This document shows, piece by piece, positions 16,699 to 26,840 of a stretch of 31,786 bases of DNA. The stretch is from Fonticula alba ATCC 38817. Its lineage: Eukaryota; Protista; Nucleariida. The DNA lies in assembly GCA_000388065.2 (NCBI GenBank), contig KB932207.1; one strand, 5' to 3'. The notes under the pieces were generated by a model. That model made no database searches, was not told the DNA's origin, and saw only the letters and a list, made by a program, of their open reading frames with translations. The position numbers and the translations under genes were made by a program. Within the stretch, counting starts at the first letter, position 1. Each line of letters opens with the position of its first letter.

Positions 16699-19600
16699 GT
16701 ATGTGTGTGTGAGCGTGGTACCGGCCCATGTAAGCCCAGGGCCCCATGGTGTCTGCCCTGCGCCGCGACCGGCACCGGAGAGCGCAGGCGGCCCCCATAC
16801 CTTTCCCCCAAGGGGGCCCCCGTGCGACGCCGGTGACCTGCCGCGCGACGTGGCCCAGCTGCCGGGGCGCGAGTCCGCCCCGGCGCATGGAGGGGAGAGG
16901 GGCCACTGGCGGAGTGCCTCGGGGCGCTGCCACCGCCCGGGGGGGGGGGGGGGGGGGGGGGGGGGCCGGGGGCGCCGCGCGCACACGGAGGCAACCCCAA
17001 CCAAAAAGAGGGAGCGGGAACCAAGGCGCAAGCACGCCAGCAAAAAAAATACAGGAAGTACGAAGGGGCGGCGGAGATCAAAAGACGGGGCGGCCGTGAG
17101 CTCATGGGTGGGGGGGGGGGGGGGGGGGGGGGAGGCAGGGGCGCGCGGGGCGCGCCAGGCGCACGTAGCCCACATACTCCCCAGGCCGGGGAGCGTCACG
17201 TATGTGGGTGCCGCCGTGTTCGGGCGCCTGGCGTGGGAGGGGGCCACGGGTGCCCCGGGGGCGAGGCGTCGGCACGTCGGACGGTCGACTGGAAGGGAGG
17301 GAAAACCGCCCGCGGGTGGCCCGGCGTCCGGGAGAGCCTTCTCGGGCGTGCTGAGGACGCACCACCCACATGTCGGCCGGTTCTGCCTGACATCATAGCC
17401 CTCGGGGAGGGGGGGNNNNNNNNNNNNNNNNNNNNNNNNNNNNNNNNNNNNNNNNNNNNNNNNNNNNNNNNNNNNNNNNNNNNNNNNNNNNNNNNNNNNN
17501 NNNNNNNNNNNNNNNNNNNNNNNNNNNNNNNNNNNNNNNNNNNNNNNNNNNNNNNNNNNNNNNNNNNNNNNNNNNNNNNNNNNNNNNNNNNNNNNNNNNN
17601 NNNNNNNNNNNNNNNNNNNNNNNNNNNNNNNNNNNNNNNNNNNNNNNNNNNNNNNNNNNNNNNNNNNNNNNNNNNNNNNNNNNNNNNNNNNNNNNNNNNN
17701 NNNNNNNNNNNNNNNNNNNNNNNNNNNNNNNNNNNNNNNNNNNNNNNNNNNNNNNNNNNNNNNNNNNNNNNNNNNNNNNNNNNNNNNNNNNNNNNNNNNN
17801 NNNNNNNNNNNNNNNNNNNNNNNNNNNNNNNNNNNNNNNNNNNNNGGGGGGGGGGGCGAGGACATGGGGCGGCTCCCCGGCCTTCACATGGGAACAGGCT
17901 GCCCGGGGTGTATACCGTGCCCCGCGTGCAGGGGGGCGGGGCAATGCGAGAGCCCTGCACGAGTCAGCAGGAGGGAACCCCGGGTCCTGGATCGCCTTCA
18001 CGCCTCCCACTCCCCCTTTCCCGGGGGCATGCCTGTGTCTGTCTGTCTGTCTCAATGTCTGTCTCAATGTCTGTCTCAATGTCTGTCTTTGTGTAAATGC
18101 ATGTGCTTGTGCGTGTGTCAGTCGGCAAAGGGGCGAGGGGGCCAGGATGGCCCTCGGGCCGGGCGCCCATGGGCCGGCCGCACCGGTGACATATTGGCCA
18201 TGGCCCCGCGCCACTGCCCGGTGGCAGGAAAGAAAGGCCCGGGCCGCTCGTCGTCTGGGAGTGCTTCCGGCCGGGCCGGATGACGCCCGGTCGAATGAGG
18301 CCGCATCCCTTTGGCGCTGGGGCCTTCTCCCCTGGCTGATCATATCCCTCGGTCCGAGAACCCGGCCGGCTATCTCTGCCGCCCCCAAGCCGGGCGGCCC
18401 ACGGGGGAGGGGTGGGGGAGACGAACGGGCGATCCTGGCGCGAGGGCGGCACGGCAATGGCGGCCGAAGGCCCGCCGGCTGGCCGGCCCCCAAGATACGC
18501 ATCCTGCCTACCTGCCACAGCCATGGCGACCGTGCTGCGCGTGGTCAGGGCGCCCCGGGCTGCTGCTGGACCAGAAATCGGATGTGCATGCGGGAGGGGC
18601 GCGGGGACGGGGCGGGGGGAGGGGGAAGGCGGAAGCCGGGCGCCAGGGTCCCCGCGCAATGCCGGCGAAAACCTCCAGCTACTGAGCCGCGCCGCGGGCG
18701 TGCTCCGGGCCGGGGGCCGGGGCCGGGCGAGGGTGAGGTAATGGGCGGTCACCGGGGGCCCCATGACTTGGCTGCTGCTGCTGCTGCTGCCCGGGCGTGC
18801 AGGCGCCTTTTGCCCGAAGCCGGCATGGGCCGCCTTTTCCCCGGCGATCTTGGCACGCGAGTCGCGGCGGCCCCGGCCGGCGCGGGGGGGGGGGGGGGCG
18901 CTCCGGGAGCGCCTCGAGCCACCCCGGACCCGAGCACGCCCCAAAGCGGCGCACGCATGCCCGGGCCTGCCTGGCCCGGCCCATGCTGTGTGGCCCCTGC
19001 CTCGTGCGTGGCCAGGCTCCTGTGCTTGGTCCGGCGTGGAGGCCGGTCCACCCGGGGGTGGGGGTGGGCCGCGCCGCGCCGGGGGAAGGCGGACCCGAAG
19101 GAGCCCCCTATGGCATGTACGGGGGGCGCGCGAGGTCCGGCGCGACGGGCAAGCCACCGCCTACCCCCATCAGCGCCGGGCGCGACCCGCGGCTCGCCCC
19201 CCCGCCCTCCCCCCCACAGAGAGAGTTATTCGGCCTGAGGGTGGCCGCGCCTGCCCGGCACGCGGGGCCGCCCGTCTTCAGGCATGTGTGTGTGTGTGTG
19301 TGTGTGTGTCCGCCTGTGCATTCACCCATGTGCACCTGGCACATGCCGAAGCTCCTCTCGGGCGCAGCCCCCTGGGCACGCCGGCGGGCGCTTCGCCGGA
19401 CCCCTCGCCCGGGTGACCCCCGGCNNNNNNNNNNNNNNNNNNNNNNNNNNNNNNNNNNNNNNNNNNNNNNNNNNNNNNNNNNNNNNNNNNNNNNNNNNNN
19501 NNNNNNNNNNNNNNNNNNNNNNNNNNNNNNNNNNNNNNNNNNNNNNNNNNNNNNNNNNNNNNNNNNNNNNNNNNNNNNNNNNNNNNNNNNNNNNNNNNNN

Positions 19601-20264
19601 NNNNNNNNNNNNNNNNNNNNNNNNNNNNNNNNNNNNNNNNNNNNNNNNNNNNNNNNNNNNNNNNNNNNNNNNNNNNNNNNNNNNNNNNNNNNNNNNNNNN
19701 NNNNNNNNNNNNNNNNNNNNNNNNNNNNNNNNNNNNNNNNNNNNNNNNNNNNNNNNNNNNNNNNNNNNNNNNNNNNNNNNNNNNNNNNNNNNNNNNNNNN
19801 NNNNNNNNNNNNNNNNNNNNNNNNNNNNNNNNNNNNNNNNNNNNNNNNNNNNNNNNNNNNNNNNNNNNNNNNNNNNNNNNNNNNNNNNNNNNNNNNNNNN
19901 NNNNNNNNNNNNNNNNNNNNNNNNNNNNNNNNNNNNNNNNNNNNNNNNNNNNNNNNNNNNNNNNNNNNNNNNNNNNNNNNNNNNNNNNNNNNNNNNNNNN
20001 NNNNNNNNNNNNNNNNNNNNNNNNNNNNNNNNNNNNNNNNNNNNNNNNNNNNNNNNNNNNNNNNNNNNNNNNNNNNNNNNNNNNNNNNNNNNNNNNNNNN
20101 NNNNNNNNNNNNNNNNNNNNNNNNNNNNNNNNNNNNNNNNNNNNNNNNNNNNNNNNNNNNNNNNNNNNNNNNNNNNNNNNNNNNNNNNNNNNNNNNNNNN
20201 NNNNNNNNNNNNNNNNNNNNNNNNNNNNNNNNNNNNNNNNNNNNNNNNNNNNNNNNNNNNNNNN

Positions 20265-20394: not shown

Positions 20395-20646
20395 CCTGTG
20401 TCCTTGTGGGTAACTGCTCCGCGCGGCTGGGCCCCGAGTGCGCCCTGGCCACCCTTGTGGCGTGGTTAGCGTGTCGCTCCATGGCGCAGGGGGCCGTGCG
20501 GCCATGGCTGTGAGAGGGCAGCCCACCACGGACCGGGGGCCGGGGTCCGCCTCTGCCTCCCCGCCCCCCGGTGAGGCATGGGATGCGGATGGGGTGCGCA
20601 CGGATGCGTACAAGCACACACACACAGGCATACACACATGCTCGTT

Positions 20647-20998
20647 GGCGCACGTTCGCGGGTTACGCGCGCATGCACTCCCCGCACGTGCCCCCACATG
20701 CCGGGCCGGGGCCGGGGCCGGGGCCGGAAGACGCCCGGCCGGGGCGGGCCGTTTGGGAGGTGCGTGTGACCGATACAGCCCACAATTGTTCTGACGATCG
20801 GCCAAATTCTCACGCCCGTGTAGGCGCACGTTCGCGGGTTACGCGCGCATGCACTCCCCGCACGTGCCCCCACATGCCGGGCCGGGGCCGGGGCCGGGGC
20901 CGGAAGACGCCCGGCCGGGGCGGGCCGTTTGGGAGGTGCGTGTGACCGATACAGCCCACAATTGTTCTGACGATCGGCCAAATTCTCACGCCCGTGTA
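20647..20998. repeat. Perfect 176-bp direct tandem duplication (2 copies)
   Basis: 20647-20822 and 20823-20998 are identical on base-by-base reading. Each copy contains a (GGGGCC)n stretch. Confidence 0.93.
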
Positions 20999-21590
20999 TG
21001 CGTGGGTGCGTGTGCCGCCATTGCGCCCCGCCCCCCNNNNNNNNNNNNNNNNNNNNNNNNNNNNNNNNNNNNNNNNNNNNNNNNNNNNNNNNNNNNNNNN
21101 NNNNNNNNNNNNNNNNNNNNNNNNNNNNNNNNNNNNNNNNNNNNNNNNNNNNNNNNNNNNNNNNNNNNNNNNNNNNNNNNNNNNNNNNNNNNNNNNNNNN
21201 NNNNNNNNNNNNNNNNNNNNNNNNNNNNNNNNNNNNNNNNNNNNNNNNNNNNNNNNNNNNNNNNNNNNNNNNNNNNNNNNNNNNNNNNNNNNNNNNNNNN
21301 NNNNNNNNNNNNNNNNNNNNNNNNNNNNNNNNNNNNNNNNNNNNNNNNNNNNNNNNNNNNNNNNNNNNNNNNNNNNNNNNNNNNNNNNNNNNNNNNNNNN
21401 NNNNNNNNNNNNNCCCCCCGCCCCAACCAAGTATGTCTCGCATCTGCGACACCGGCCCAGCCGTCTCGCCCTCGTATCCGGGTTCTTTTTTTTTCTCCAC
21501 CCACCGCGCTCACGGGCAATGCCCCGCACTGACCACCATGCTGTCCCTGTGCGGGTCGCCGCCCTGGCGCGCCGGGCGAAAAGGAAAGTC

Positions 21591-21956
21591 ATGCGGCGCA
21601 CCACCAGCTGGTTGAGCTGGAGCGCCGTGGCCACGGCTGCTCTGCTGGCGCTCCTCTCCAGCCATTATGCGACACTGGCCCGGCCGATCCCGGCCGGGTC
21701 GGCTGCCGCCCCCGCGGTGGCCATCCTTCCGGATGGCACCACCGGGGCTGATGCCGACGCTGACCAGCGCCTGCTGGTCAAGCTCAAGGCGGCCGCCGAT
21801 CAGGCTGCCGTGCGGGGCCCGGGCCCCAAGCCCCAAGACGATGGGTCCTCTCGGCGCGAGCAACGAGGTGCGTCGTCACTGCCGGCTGTGTCCCCGTCCC
21901 GGTCCCGCTTTCCCCGGCGCGAGCCGCATCGGTAGTTGCCCCGTGTGTGTGTGTGT

Positions 21957-21991
<35 letters not shown>

Positions 21992-22624
21992 TCTGTGTGT
22001 GTGTGTGTGTGTGTGCTTGTGTGTGCTTGTGTCCGTGGGGCCTTGTTCCTTGTCCTCCGCCCTCCTCTCCATCTCCACGCGGCTTCCGTGCCACCATTCT
22101 CCCGCATCCACAAGTGTCCGACCATGTCTCCAGCCAGGCGGCCGGGCAGCCGGGGGCCAGGGCCCTGTCATCCAAGTGAATGCGTGTGTGTGTGTGTGTG
22201 TGTCTATGTGTGCCTCTCTGCGTATTCGTGTCTGTGACCGTGTGGGAGCCCGCGCGCCAGCTTGATCGCACATCTGTCCGTGTGGGCAGGCACCTGGGTG
22301 CTTCGGGGCGCGCGCGCTTGTGTGTGTTTGTGCGTGTATGCACATACGTGTATCTGCGCGGAAGCACACACACACGCACGCGCAGGCAAGCAGGCCGGAC
22401 ACTGGCGCCGGCACCGGCAGCAACGTTGCCGTCGCCCCCCCCCCTCCCCTCTCCTCCCCGAGCACGATGGCGCCCGACCCTGCTGGCGCCGGGCCGCCCC
22501 CGCGCGTGGGTCGCCGCTTGACATCTGCGCGCGCACACACACGCACACAGCAAAGCAGCAATCTCATATTGATGACGCGCCACTCCCCTTCGCCCGCCGC
22601 CGCCCGGTGTTGCTTGGGCTCCCG

Positions 22625-22671
<47 letters not shown>

Positions 22672-22776
22672 CCTGGGTGCATGGACACCCGCGGGCGCTC
22701 GCATGCCCTCGTGCACACGCCTTTCGTCCCGCCCCTGGTCCCCCCTTGGCCTCCGGTGCCCCCCCCCCGCCCCCCT

Positions 22777-22807
<31 letters not shown>

Positions 22808-25800
22808 GCTCCCCCCGGCCGCGCACCCCTGGTGGGGCGGGCCAAAAGAAAAAGACCGCGATGACAAGGCCCCAGGCCGCCGCCCGCCCCTGCTCACTGA
22901 CACGCTGAATGTCTTCTTCTCACACCTGCCGCTGAAAAAAATCGACGAAGAGTGCAACCTCGTGTGTGCCCAGATCTGGGACCCCATCTGCGCCATCGAC
23001 GGAAAGACCTACAACAACCAGTGCGAATACGAACGGGCCATCTGCATGCAGGGGCTCTTTGCCATGGGGGTGCAGAACCGCGGCCCCTGCGCCGGAGACC
23101 TCCGTGCGTCTCTCATCCGCTTTGTTTGGTTTATGCATCGCCTTGTGAAGCAGCCGTCGCCGTCGCCCACGCCCACGCCCACGCCCACGCCCGCACGCAC
23201 TCGCTCCGCCTCGCAGGCTGACAGCATGCGTGCCTTCGACACCGCCGCCGCCGCCGCCGCCATCGACACCCTCCTCGCCACGGCCACCGTCGACCTGGAC
23301 CTGGCGTCGTCGGGCGCTCTCGGCACCCTAGACCGCATTGGCCGGCACTTCCCGGGCGGCCGCAAGGGCGCCACGGCCGCCGCCTCGCCGAAGGCCGACC
23401 GCGAGCTGGCCAAGGCCCGTGACTGCGCCGGGAACCTGTGCGCCGAGATCTTCGACCCGGTGTGCGCCACCAACGGCCGGCAGTACAACAACCGGTGCGA
23501 GCTGGACCGGGCCGCCTGCGCCACCGGGCTCACGGCCGACTGGCTGAAGGTGGCCCCCGGCGGGTCCTGCGAGGCGGACCCGGCCAAGCAGCTCCACGAG
23601 TGCGGCATCCACTGCCCGGAGGATGCCCTGCGCCAGGCCCAGGGCCCGCCCGGCAGCGGTGGCGGCCCGCTCAAGTCCGCCGTTTGCGGCACCGACGGCA
23701 TCACCTATGATGGGCCCTGCTCGCTGGCCCGCGCCCGGTGCTTCTACCACGATGGCAATGCCGTGCAGGAGGGCGCCAATTGGCACATCGTCGCCTCGAA
23801 GGGGGCCTGCCCGGAGGCCCCGGGCGCGCCTCGGCCCACGGCCGGCGTCCTGGCCGCCGATGACGACCCGGTCCCGTGCGACGGCTTCTGCACGGAGATC
23901 TACCAGCCGGTGTGCGGCTCCGACAGCCGGACCTACGGCAATGCGTGCGAGCTGGCGCGCACGCGCTCGTGCGGCGTGTCCGCCGCCGGGTACGGCCTGT
24001 TCATCGCCTACGACGGCGAGTGCACCCCGGATGGCGAATGCCCGCAGGCCTGCACCCGCGAGTATGACCCGGTGTGCGCCTCCAACCAGGAGACCTATGC
24101 CAATGCCTGTGTCTTCCGGGCCAACCGCTGCGAGAGCGGCCCGAACGCCGCGCAGCTGATCATCCAGCATCGCGGCCCGTGCTCCGGCAACTACCCGGTC
24201 GATGAGACCGTCCCGGAGCCCGGCACCGGCGAGCTGGCCGGCAGCAGCAGCGACGGCAGCGACGGCAGCGCCGGCGTGCCCGGCAACTGCCCGCAATTCT
24301 GCACCCTCCAGTGGGCCCCGGTGTGCGGGACCAATGGCGTGACGTACGGCAATGCGTGCGGCTTTGCCGTGGCCAAGTGCTCGGACCCGGACATGGCCAA
24401 TGTGGAGATCCGCCACAATGGCGAGTGTGGGGACGGCGGCAGCGGCGGCAGCAGCACCGGCGGCAGCAGCAGCAGCAGCAGCAGCGGCTCCTCGTCCGCC
24501 GAGGCGCCGCCCGTTGTCTTCGGCAAGTCCTACTGCGACAATGACGACGCCAGCGCCAGCGCTTCGGCCATGTGTGCCGAGGCCTTCCCGGATGCCGGGC
24601 CCGATGCCATCTGCCTGGACGAGCCGAAGCAGTGCCTGGTGGAGCCCTGCCCGCAGTTCACCTGCGTCCCGCGGAATGTTGGCTGCGGCATTCGCTGCGA
24701 CCCGTCGCAGATCAACCCCGTGTGCGGGTCCGACGGCCGGTGGAGCTCCAACGAGTGTCTCTTCCTTTCGCGCCTGTGTCGCATGGAGGATGACTCGGCG
24801 GCCGTGTCGGCCTCGTCGTCGGCCTCGTCGTCGGCCTCGTCGTCGGGGTCGGCTGCCGTGGCAAGCATGCGCCGGGCGGCCCGCTCTGCCAGCGGGTCCT
24901 CCTCGTCGGAGGATCACTCCGACAGCGAGGGCGACTCCGACAGCGAGGAGGATGGCAGCGAGCCCTTCATGGCCGTGCACCAGACTTCGCGCTCGGTGTG
25001 TGGCTGCGATTGCGATGGCCGCGTCATGGTGCGTGTCTGCTTGGATGTGTGCTCGCGCCTTGGGGCCCGTGTGGCGGCGTGAGGGGCCGGCCAAAGCCAG
25101 GGCCTGTGCCAAGGGGAGCGCCGGCCGACCGCGGGAGGGGGGTGGCCAGAGAGAGAGAGAGAGACAGAGAGAGAGAGAACGGGCGCATGCCAGGCGTGGT
25201 GAAGCAAGAGACCTATGCCTCGCCCTCCTGGGGAGCAGCCCCCCAGGAGGGGATGCCAAGGCTCGTGAGCGAGAAGAGGAGGACGAGAGCGTGCATGAGA
25301 GTGTGACTGAGAGCGTGCATGAGAGTGTGACTGAGAGAGTGCATGAGAGCGCGAATACGAGTGTGAGTGAGAGCGTGACTCAAAGCATGACTGAGAGCGT
25401 GAATGAGAGCGTGAATGAGAGCGTGAATGAGAGCGTGAATGAGAGCGTGACCGAGGCCCCAGACACAGGCATCGAAGAGCGACAGAGCGAGCCAGCCCCC
25501 CCCGAGAACGGCCGAAAGTGAGAATGAAAGGAGGCGAAGGAGGAGAGCCAGCCAGATAGTAGCATGCGCACGCCCTAACCACACCATCCGGCGGGCACAC
25601 CCCTACACACAGGACCTCTCCTGGAGCCAGATGCTGCAGCTGGCCCAGCTGCCGGCCGACTCGCGCACGCTGGACTTCGGCGACCTGGTCAAGATCCGCC
25701 GGGCCCTGAGCAACCCCAATGGCGAGGGCTTCGACGAGAATGACGACGGCACTTTCAACCGCAACGTCTCGCGCGACATGGCCCACCGCCGCCCGGCCCG

Positions 25801-26840
25801 CCGCCAGCAGGAGGAGGCCACCATGGATGTCATGGTCCGCGCCGACCCGGCCCTCGTGGACTACAGCGCCCTGTCGATGCTGGGTCTGGCCGACCACAAT
25901 GGCGATGGCCTGATGACGGAGGACGAGTTCACCGACCTGAAGCGCTACTACCACGCCACGCAGGGGGTGCCGATTGACCCGGCCGAGGTGGCCGCCGGTT
26001 CGGCCACCGGGGGTGCTCGCTCCGACAAGGATCGCATCATGTCCCCGAGCGCCATGGGCGGTCTGATCGGTGTGGCGGTCATCGCCCTCGGTGTGGCCGG
26101 TGTCGTGGGCTCGCTCAAGGTCAAGGAGCAGATGACCTTCCGGCGGAACTGGTGCGTGTGTCGGGTTTGCCTTTTCTGCGCCCCCGCTTTCTTTCTCTCG
26201 GGCGCGCGCGCCGGGGCCGACGGAGAGGGACAAGCAGGGAGTGCCGGCGGGNNNNNNNNNNNNNNNNNNNNNNNNNNNNNNGGGGGGGGGGGGGCAGCCT
26301 CCTCTCTTGCCCCCCGGCGCGCGTGTAAGGGCCGAAGACCGGCGCGCGCGCCTGCCTGCCCCCGACGCGCATTCGGCACACAAAACGACCGGCCGACGAG
26401 GGGCCGGGCATGGCACCCTGCCTGTTGGTCGGCACGTCGCCGCCTGATGTTATGAATGTGCCGCAAACTGACAACCCGAGCTCGTCTGCTCTCGCGCTCC
26501 CTCCCCCCCCCCCCCCGGCTCGCACGCCACCCCCACCGGCCCTGGTGGTGTGTGTTGGCGACGGCCCGCCGCCGGCAGCCGTCTTCACGACCAGGAGGAG
26601 GCCGCCGCCCGGACGTCGGCCCCGGCCTCGCTCCGGTCCCTGAGCATGGCCAGCCTGCAGGCCCTGCACGAGCTGAGCCCCACCTCCCCCGGGCGCCTGG
26701 GATACAGCCAGATCGAGATGGACACCCTGGGCCCGAACGTGGAGTCCGCCGTCGCCGACGCGCCGGCCGCCGCCGGTGATGACGCCGACGCGAGTGACAC
26801 CCCGTCGGGTGCCGACTCTCGTGGTGCCTCGGCTGAGTAG
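21591..26840 (+). CDS. Type I membrane protein with signal peptide, 7 Kazal-type domains, a 6-Cys module, EF-hand(s), one TM helix and a cytoplasmic tail, ~1050 aa
   Basis: Preferred exons 21591-21867, 22951-25028, 25613-26151 and 26579-26840 are in frame (3156 nt). Signal-like N-terminus: MRRTTSWLSWSAVATAALLALLSSHYATLA. Kazal C-x-C-x7-PVC-x-(D/N)G-TY-N-C patterns lie at 22953-23090, 23424-23570, 23601-23810, 23877-24023, 24039-24182, 24288-24428 and 24684-25001. EF loop DHNGDGLMTEDE; TM segment AMGGLIGVAVIALGVAGVVGSL followed by KVK. Two extra small exons (22115-22175, 22394-22505) are possible but have atypical donors. Confidence 0.82.
25284..25450. repeat. Degenerate 12-nt tandem repeat (GAGAGCGTGAAT-type) in intron 2 of the Kazal gene
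   Basis: GAGAGCGTG(AAT/CAT/ACT) units are read directly. Confidence 0.85.

Follow-up and report, generated by a model that had tools for sequence, protein, structure and literature searches.

Predicted gene structure

The window analysed here is a 31,786-nt stretch of contig KB932207.1 (assembly GCA_000388065.2) of Fonticula alba ATCC 38817, and at positions 21591-26840 it carries the pieces of a Kazal-domain protein with EF-hand loops and a transmembrane (TM) helix. The region is GC-rich (~0.65-0.72) and has many assembly gaps. In the ORF list the pieces lie on four open reading frames (ORFs), all on the plus strand: 20994-21935, 22320-25082, 25631-26455 and 26550-26840. These four ORFs are probably parts of one four-exon gene, with junctions that we predict in silico. 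Exon 1 (21591-21867) starts at an ATG, encodes a signal-peptide-like N-terminus and a low-complexity pro-region of ~60 residues, and ends in phase 1 before G/GTGCGT (the slash marks the junction). Exon 2 (22951-25028) encodes the Kazal array, and its GC content at third codon positions (GC3) is 0.8-1.0. Exon 3 (25613-26151; GC3 0.91) encodes the juxtamembrane ectodomain with a degenerate and a canonical EF loop, the TM helix and the basic stop-transfer sequence KVKEQMTFRR. Exon 4 (26579-26840; GC3 0.88, rising to 0.97 at 26640-26759) encodes the remainder of the predicted cytoplasmic tail and ends in a TAG stop at 26838-26840; a Pfam scan of exon 4 found no family. Joined end to end, the four exons form an in-frame sequence of 3156 nt that is free of internal stops, and each exon has a GC3 within 0.80-0.91.

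The three predicted introns, also on the plus strand, share a common set of signals. Intron 1 (21868-22950, 1083 nt) has the donor GTGCGT and a CTGAC motif at 22897, and its acceptor is the first AG after that motif, 50 nt from the branch-site A. Intron 2 (25029-25612, 584 nt) opens with the donor atg/GTGCGT in phase 0 and has CTAAC at 25575; its acceptor, the CAG at 25610-25612, is again the first AG, 34 nt from the branch-site A. Intron 3 (26152-26578, 427 nt) has the donor ctg/GTGCGT in phase 2, CTGAC at 26468 and the acceptor CAG at 26576-26578, which lies 107 nt from the branch motif and is the first AG bar one located 8 nt past that motif. In all three introns, then, the acceptor is the first usable AG past the last CTAAC or CTGAC, and all three donors read G/GTGCGT. 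The window contains 16 copies of GGTGCGT, where 6.1 are expected, and none of 100 shuffles attains that count. The frame is kept at three of three junctions chosen by this rule, for which the chance expectation is about 1 in 27.

Codon periodicity agrees with these boundaries. Exons 2-4 show a strong periodicity of third-position GC in the frames predicted for them, and the three introns have none. In particular, the frame of the periodicity shifts between exons 3 and 4, and a splice is therefore required there. An upstream exon with a signal peptide is needed as well, because exon 2 opens with the first cysteine of a Kazal unit and has no plausible in-frame upstream ATG; the apparent 'coding' sequence upstream of exon 2 is derived solely from microsatellites. 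Exon 3 itself lacks a signal peptide, and the stretch from its acceptor to the ATG at 25631 contains no start codon. If intron 2 were not spliced, the Kazal ORF would stop at 25082. The sequence-only reading had named a GTGCGT donor at 25029, a CTAAC upstream of the exon at 25613 and the junctions 21867/22951, 25028/25613 and 26151/26579, and had proposed that splicing joins the separate ORFs into one gene; we find the donors GTGCGT at 21868, 25029 and 26152, the CTAAC at 25575 and CAG acceptors. Splicing of this kind is most likely, judging from frame, splice signals, periodicity and a relative that carries the same domains in a single ORF (P0007; see below).

Repetitive sequence fills much of the introns. 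Intron 1 contains (GT)41, (TG)21 and a poly-C run of ~58 and shows no codon periodicity, while intron 2 contains (AG)15 and a 12-mer repeat in 13.8 copies and loses the periodicity of the preceding exon. The microsatellite and repeat tracts were mapped to 21943-22032, 22626-22668, 22759-22829 and 25285-25450. The intronic (GT)n, poly-C and 12-mer (~14 copies) repeats thereby create long spurious ORFs in several frames on both strands. The opposite-strand and alternative-frame ORFs, including one at 24352-25521, contain no Pfam family, and their length is a product of GC content. An Rfam scan gave no match.

An assembly gap at 26252-26281 falls within intron 3, where 100 nt separate it from the donor at 26152 and 297 nt from the acceptor at 26578. 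Since the gap is intronic, the model does not depend on continuity or frame across it. Its left flank ends in GGCGGG and its right flank begins with a run of 13 G, and codon periodicity is present on neither side; the gap has the appearance of a failed read through a homopolymer, and may hide a small exon.

One further in-frame intron is a candidate at 23104-23331 (228 nt, plus strand), between the first and second Kazal units. It has a GTGCGT donor, a CTGAC at 23218 and a usable AG at 23331, and its AG-free tail of 107 nt to the acceptor gives it the geometry of intron 3. By codon usage only 23104-23153 is non-coding-like, and the GC3 of 0.9-1.0 at 23200-23331 favours coding. The segment may be retained in the transcript, and the number of Kazal units is the same either way. 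Shorter introns at 23104-23150 or 23104-23153 were rejected, as they break the frame and run into a stop.

Kazal array

The protein belongs to the Kazal family (PF00050/PF07648; MEROPS I1). The Pfam scan of 22950-25028 finds seven Kazal stretches, with E-values of 9.2e-51 for Kazal_2 (170.2 bits, cutoff 22.8) and 1e-49 for Kazal_1 (166.7 bits, cutoff 21). A regular-expression map of the cysteines shows that six units out of seven possess the full set of cysteines (paired C1-C5, C2-C4 and C3-C6 in the Kazal fold), at standard spacing. In order along the plus strand, these are K1 (22953-23090, P1 Gln), K2 (23424-23570, P1 Glu), K3 (23601-23810, with a 23-residue insert between Cys2 and Cys3), K4 (23877-24023, P1 Glu), K5 (24039-24182, CTREYDPVC, P1 Arg) and K6 (24288-24428, CTLQWAPVC, P1 Leu). 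The seventh unit, K7 (24684-24779), has five cysteines, lacks Cys6 and has an 8-residue loop. An extra six-cysteine module (24534-24665) lies between K6 and K7. Downstream of K7, a linker rich in Ser, Asp and Glu leads to a CGCDC motif (24999-25013) just before the end of exon 2; this motif holds three spare cysteines, 74 residues from K7. The seven Kazal domains counted by the sequence-only reading are thus all present, the last of them without its sixth cysteine.

The reactive loops of K5 and K6 look like those of established inhibitors. The K5 loop fits the SPINK1-type pattern C-T-K/R-x-Y-D-P-V-C, and for K6 the alignments are to OMTKY3 (CTLEY in OMTKY3, CTLQW here) and, at E 1e-10, to the Anemonia elastase inhibitor 1y1b. 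Against the PDB sequences, the Kazal exon matches agrin, ovomucoid, the Anemonia elastase inhibitor, follistatin and SPINK1. K5-K6 find agrin as the best match (E 3e-12), with follistatin also matching, while the extra six-cysteine module together with K7 gives weak matches to follistatin (E 0.21) and FSTL1 (E 0.83).

EF-hand region, transmembrane helix and termini

The first part of exon 3 encodes two EF loops in an ectodomain segment that contains no cysteine. The downstream loop, DHNGDGLMTEDE (25892-25927, followed by F), is canonical and matches PROSITE PS00018 exactly. Across the 63,568 residues of the window's six frames, the canonical loop (DHNGDGLMTEDEF) is the sole PS00018 match; when the exon 3 peptide was shuffled 200,000 times, 349 of the shuffled versions (0.17%) fitted the pattern. 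The upstream loop, DENDDGTFNRNV (25733-25768), is degenerate and breaks the pattern at positions 8 and 12. Pfam reports EF-hand_7 (PF13499) over residues 41-108 of exon 3, at E 0.0098 and 16.7 bits for a cutoff of 30, and EF-hand_1 (PF00036) at E 0.02 and 14.9 bits for a cutoff of 25.4. The pair model covers both loops, which are spaced 53 residues apart versus the usual ~36.

The TM helix lies at about 26051-26125, where the mean Kyte-Doolittle hydropathy over 19 residues is 2.35, and is followed by the basic KVKEQMTFRR. At the other end of the protein, the N-terminus begins MRRTT and continues with a hydrophobic core of ~16 residues and small residues; its best 19-residue window (residues 12-30) has a mean hydropathy of 1.49. 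Hydropathy and inspection by eye thus predict a signal peptide, and with the TM helix a type I single-pass membrane protein. The cytoplasmic tail would then be ~100 residues long, and is acidic and rich in Ser and Pro; it includes YSQI (26703-26714), a YxxPhi-type sequence and putative sorting motif. Both the signal peptide and the TM helix had been proposed from the sequence, and the hydropathy values bear this out as a prediction. Both EF loops, one canonical and one degenerate, lie at the positions that the sequence-only reading gave for them; the Pfam thresholds are not reached.

Relatives of the protein

A search with the Kazal exon identified 112 proteins, all generic Kazal arrays, with 23-32% overall identity (one short match reaches 49%). 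Their sources are crustaceans, molluscs, oomycetes, Vitrella, volvocine algae, bacteria and metagenomes, and the Fonticula Kazal units show no greater closeness to animal matrix proteins than to the arrays of oomycetes, alveolates, algae or bacteria. Two of the environmental eukaryotic arrays (P0052 and P0054) lack an EF-hand and have, on their C-terminal side, a TM helix followed by a cytoplasmic tail, so the Fonticula alba gene is not alone in encoding a Kazal array tethered to the membrane.

The sequence-only reading had called for a search for the same architecture outside animals, and this search yields one match among the 112 relatives. The match, P0007 (684 residues), is encoded by an unrelated AT-rich eukaryote in one uninterrupted ORF and is the only one of the relatives with an EF pattern. 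Its parts are a signal peptide, ten Kazal domains, a pair of EF-hands (EF-hand_1, E 4e-10), a stalk rich in Ser, and a TM helix with a 23-residue tail behind it. The gene was found in the Logan run ERR1598039 (L001:516-2570) and, 99% identical, on the JGI contig Ga0209960_1005058 (L002:2444-4501). The neighbouring genes are Q/N-rich and encode a Q-rich UBA-like protein and a PXA-domain protein, the latter with short introns. The domain order of the two proteins is the same, running from signal peptide and Kazal array through EF-hand pair and stalk to the TM helix and a tail, which in P0007 carries YEPM as its YxxPhi-like motif. They differ in that P0007 has ten Kazal domains, two EF loops that are both near canonical and a tail of only 23 residues, and they show no specific sequence kinship beyond the domains themselves. 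Either common origin or convergence would account for the likeness. The occurrence of this architecture in nature makes the spliced Fonticula model more credible.

Exon 3 has few relatives. A phmmer search against 1.84 billion representative proteins returned four matches (E 9e-6 to 4e-5), all multi-EF-hand repeat proteins; they cover only residues 65-110, and the E-value of 9e-6 is the sum of repeated weak matches to one loop. The same search found no orthologue of exon 3. A feature search of the ESM Atlas found nothing for exon 3 or for the P0007 C-terminus, and a word search with the P0007 C-terminus recovered P0007 alone. With exon 2, exon 3 and the neighbouring NKAP protein as queries, no self-match was returned; the Fonticula alba proteome is therefore evidently outside the databases searched, which says nothing about its annotation. 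A full-text literature search found no account of Kazal proteins in Fonticula, of Kazal, EF-hand and TM segments combined in protists, of SPARC in unicellular relatives or of Kazal domains in Dictyostelium, and no reference to the run ERR1598039.

One gene or two

The locus can also be read as two genes: one for a secreted Kazal array that ends at 25082 (GRVM plus 17 further residues), and a second for an EF-hand/TM protein that starts at the ATG at 25631, lacks a signal peptide and is spliced at 26151/26579. This would account for the separate ORFs in the ORF list and for the first ATG of the exon 3 ORF, which lies 18 nt past the proposed acceptor, and among the matches no architecture is nearly as common as the secreted multi-Kazal protein that lacks an anchor. 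The boundaries of intron 2, however, are difficult to reconcile with two genes. A consensus G/GTGCGT stands exactly where the periodicity ends, 54 nt before the stop, and at the exact point where it restarts are the CTAAC, a stretch rich in pyrimidines and the first AG, with both ends in phase. The 584-nt interval is rich in microsatellites and leaves scant space for a terminator and a promoter. The second product would be unusual in itself, namely a signal-less protein with a 146-residue N-terminal EF domain facing outwards and positive charges after the TM helix, whereas P0007 carries the fused architecture in one ORF. We consider two genes unlikely, and return in what follows to the single four-exon gene.

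Proposed function

With little more than even confidence, we lean towards a type I membrane glycoprotein of ~1051 residues that acts as a tethered, multi-headed serine-protease inhibitor and is encoded by the one four-exon gene. From the N-terminus, its parts would be the signal peptide, seven Kazal domains with the extra six-cysteine module, an acidic Ser-rich linker, the EF pair, the TM helix and a tail with the YxxPhi-type motif. At the outer face of the plasma membrane, the reactive loop of K5 (P1 Arg) would engage trypsin-like targets, and that of K6 (P1 Leu) chymotrypsin-, elastase- or subtilisin-like targets. If the tail motif is endocytic, K5 and K6 would instead be delivered towards the lumen of a phagosome or lysosome. 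At either site, the inhibitor might shield the bacterivorous cell's own surface from proteases that are derived from prey or secreted by the cell itself. In a high-calcium extracellular medium, the EF-hand would be expected to serve as a structural, calcium-stabilised element of the stalk and not as a switch.

The protein shares features with several well studied systems. The multi-domain Kazal inhibitors (ovomucoid/ovoinhibitor, SPINK1, SPINK5/LEKTI, oomycete EPI1/EPI10 and apicomplexan TgPI) likewise consist of tandem six-cysteine units behind a signal peptide, and the reactive loops of K5 and K6 are nearly identical in pattern to those of SPINK1 and OMTKY3, respectively. Ovomucoid and the SPINK, EPI and TgPI proteins, however, are soluble and secreted, whereas the Fonticula protein has an EF-hand region, a TM helix, a long tail and the odd units K3 and K7. 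Inhibitor modules anchored to the membrane are also found in the animal type I TM proteins HAI-1/HAI-2 (SPINT1/2), which use the Kunitz fold and have no EF-hand. RECK, which is GPI-anchored and contains Kazal motifs (PMC12842694), follows the same principle of inhibitor modules held at the cell surface, and differs in its GPI anchor, its metalloprotease targets and its lack of an EF-hand. We claim no homology with either HAI-1/HAI-2 or RECK. The tomoregulins (TMEFF1/2) combine two follistatin/Kazal modules and an EGF domain with a single TM helix and have a short tail, and agrin contains a long array of Kazal/follistatin modules; neither has an EF-hand, in contrast to the Fonticula protein. 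The Pfam scan of the Fonticula exons found no EGF, laminin-G, NtA or SEA domain. Membership of the tomoregulin family was rejected, since no EGF family was found in that scan, although a TM helix is present.

An alternative retains the gene model and gives most of the Kazal array no inhibitory role, by analogy with agrin, follistatin and tomoregulin. The protein would then be a ligand- or matrix-binding or adhesion receptor, stabilised by calcium through the EF-hand and signalling through its tail. The agrin and follistatin matches of K5-K6, and the weak follistatin and FSTL1 matches further downstream, fit such a receptor, as does a long tail with possible phosphorylation and sorting motifs. 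The reactive loops of K5 and K6, however, are textbook inhibitory loops, and the acidic or polar P1 residues of other units are compatible with inhibition; the oomycete inhibitor EPI1 has Asp at P1. The Pfam scan revealed neither adhesion nor matrix domains, and no candidate for a ligand is known. A receptor of this kind is, in our judgement, rather improbable.

Several observations weigh against a tethered inhibitor encoded by four exons. The first concerns the array itself: the P1 residues of K1, K2 and K4 are Gln, Glu and Glu, K3 has the insert in its reactive loop and K7 lacks Cys6, features that also favour the receptor. With non-standard loops in K1-K4 and K7, most modules may be non-inhibitory, as in agrin and follistatin. 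The EF-hand scores lie under the Pfam gathering thresholds, and only one loop is canonical. Single-sequence AlphaFold2 (AF2) models were of little help, as exon 3 reached a predicted local distance difference test (pLDDT) score of 44.6, too poor for a fold search, and the last Kazal domain plus EF pair of P0007 reached 40.0, likewise not usable. P0007 is not specifically close to the Fonticula protein either, ranking between 4th and 49th per Kazal unit, and the two EF regions align at E 0.007 only. As an orthologue in relatives was found for neither exon 3 nor the whole architecture, conservation cannot back the function. Exon 1 is a weak point of the model: there is an alternative in-frame upstream start (ATG at 21519, as against 21591), its codon periodicity is weaker than that of exons 2-4, and a 377-nt assembly gap (21037-21413) lies 178 nt upstream.

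Kazal arrays are common secreted inhibitors, and seven Kazal domains tethered beside an EF-hand are rare, with one other case among the 112 relatives. As an inhibitor, the protein is a reasonable candidate for a protector of the cell surface or the phagosome membrane against proteases during bacterivory or fruiting.

Relationship to animal matrix proteins

SPARC/BM-40, testican (SPOCK), SMOC and FSTL1 also have a Kazal-type module N-terminal to extracellular EF-hands; in these proteins a follistatin-like (FS) domain, made up of FOLN and Kazal parts, precedes an EC domain that has two EF-hands. The sequence-only reading had described the Fonticula protein as animal-matrix-like and possibly an ancient opisthokont protein of the SPARC type. 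Our analysis does not support membership of the SPARC/testican/SMOC group. Exon 3 has no match to PF10591 (SPARC_Ca_bdg) at E<=1, and its search of PDB sequences returned no SPARC or FSTL chain at E<=10, the sole matches being of the calmodulin type (E 0.4-1). The six-cysteine module before K7 stands where a FOLN (EGF-like) subdomain would lie; it has no match to PF09289 at E<=1 and, with K7, the weak follistatin and FSTL1 matches given above. The linker between K7 and the EF loops is acidic and ~70 residues long, so that the two do not form a contiguous FS-EC pair. The EC domain of SPARC is disulfide-bonded, whereas the EF region here has no cysteines; moreover, SPARC is secreted and has no TM helix, whereas the Fonticula protein has a TM anchor, and seven Kazal domains versus one.

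The description as an ancient SPARC-type protein is thus unsupported, given the missing PF10591 match, the absence of cysteines from the EF region, the lack of an orthologue and Kazal units that are not close to those of animals. The other possibility raised from the sequence, an independently assembled Kazal-EF surface protein with a potential role as a protease shield, fits better. As judged from its sequence, the protein seems to be the product of domain shuffling within its own lineage and not a relative of SPARC, testican or SMOC. Its parts are ordinary and their combination is rare; it has no specific tie to animal matrix proteins and opens no long-standing question. 'Animal-like' ectodomains with Kazal domains and EF-hands can arise via independent domain shuffling, which calls for caution in reconstructions of the pre-metazoan matrix toolkit.

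A wider proposal would unite the Fonticula protein and P0007 in a new class of Kazal receptors, calcium-dependent and tethered to the membrane, of amoeboid eukaryotes that feed on bacteria and possibly aggregate. Members of the class would sense or capture extracellular serine proteases and signal or traffic via their YxxPhi tails, and would derive from an ancient Kazal-EF module related to the FS-EC module of SPARC and testican, or have been assembled twice by convergence. We regard this as very unlikely.

Finally, true homology with the follistatin-EC module of animal SPARC, testican, SMOC and FSTL, inherited from an opisthokont ancestor, is extremely unlikely: the similar domain order, the opisthokont affinity of the host (the best matches of the neighbouring NKAP protein are fungal and arthropod, at ~60% identity) and a weak, below-cutoff SPARC_Ca_bdg match of the P0007 EF region (E 0.015) speak for it, but generic multi-EF-hand proteins match PF10591 as well or better, so that the P0007 match is unspecific, and exon 3, in addition to its failed profile and chain searches, its cysteine-free EF region, the long acidic linker and the TM helix, has no orthologue in 1.84e9 representatives.

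Neighbouring genes and repeats

Two other genes were identified in the window. A gene for the rRNA-processing protein UTP25 lies at 3185-5527 on the plus strand and is split over at least two ORFs, with an NTPase-like domain (E 3.5e-63) and Utp25_C (E 2.5e-41); GGTGCGT motifs at 4765 and 5046 within it suggest further introns. A gene of the NKAP family, whose fungal and arthropod relatives were mentioned above, lies at 8893-10995 on the minus strand and encodes a protein with Nkap_C (E 2.3e-43) and a long N-terminal extension.

Between the assembly gaps at 19425-20264 and 21037-21413, a 176-nt unit is perfectly duplicated in tandem at 20644-20995 (100% and 99% identity). The assembly could have produced this duplication artificially, or it could be a genuine minisatellite a short way upstream of the Kazal gene.

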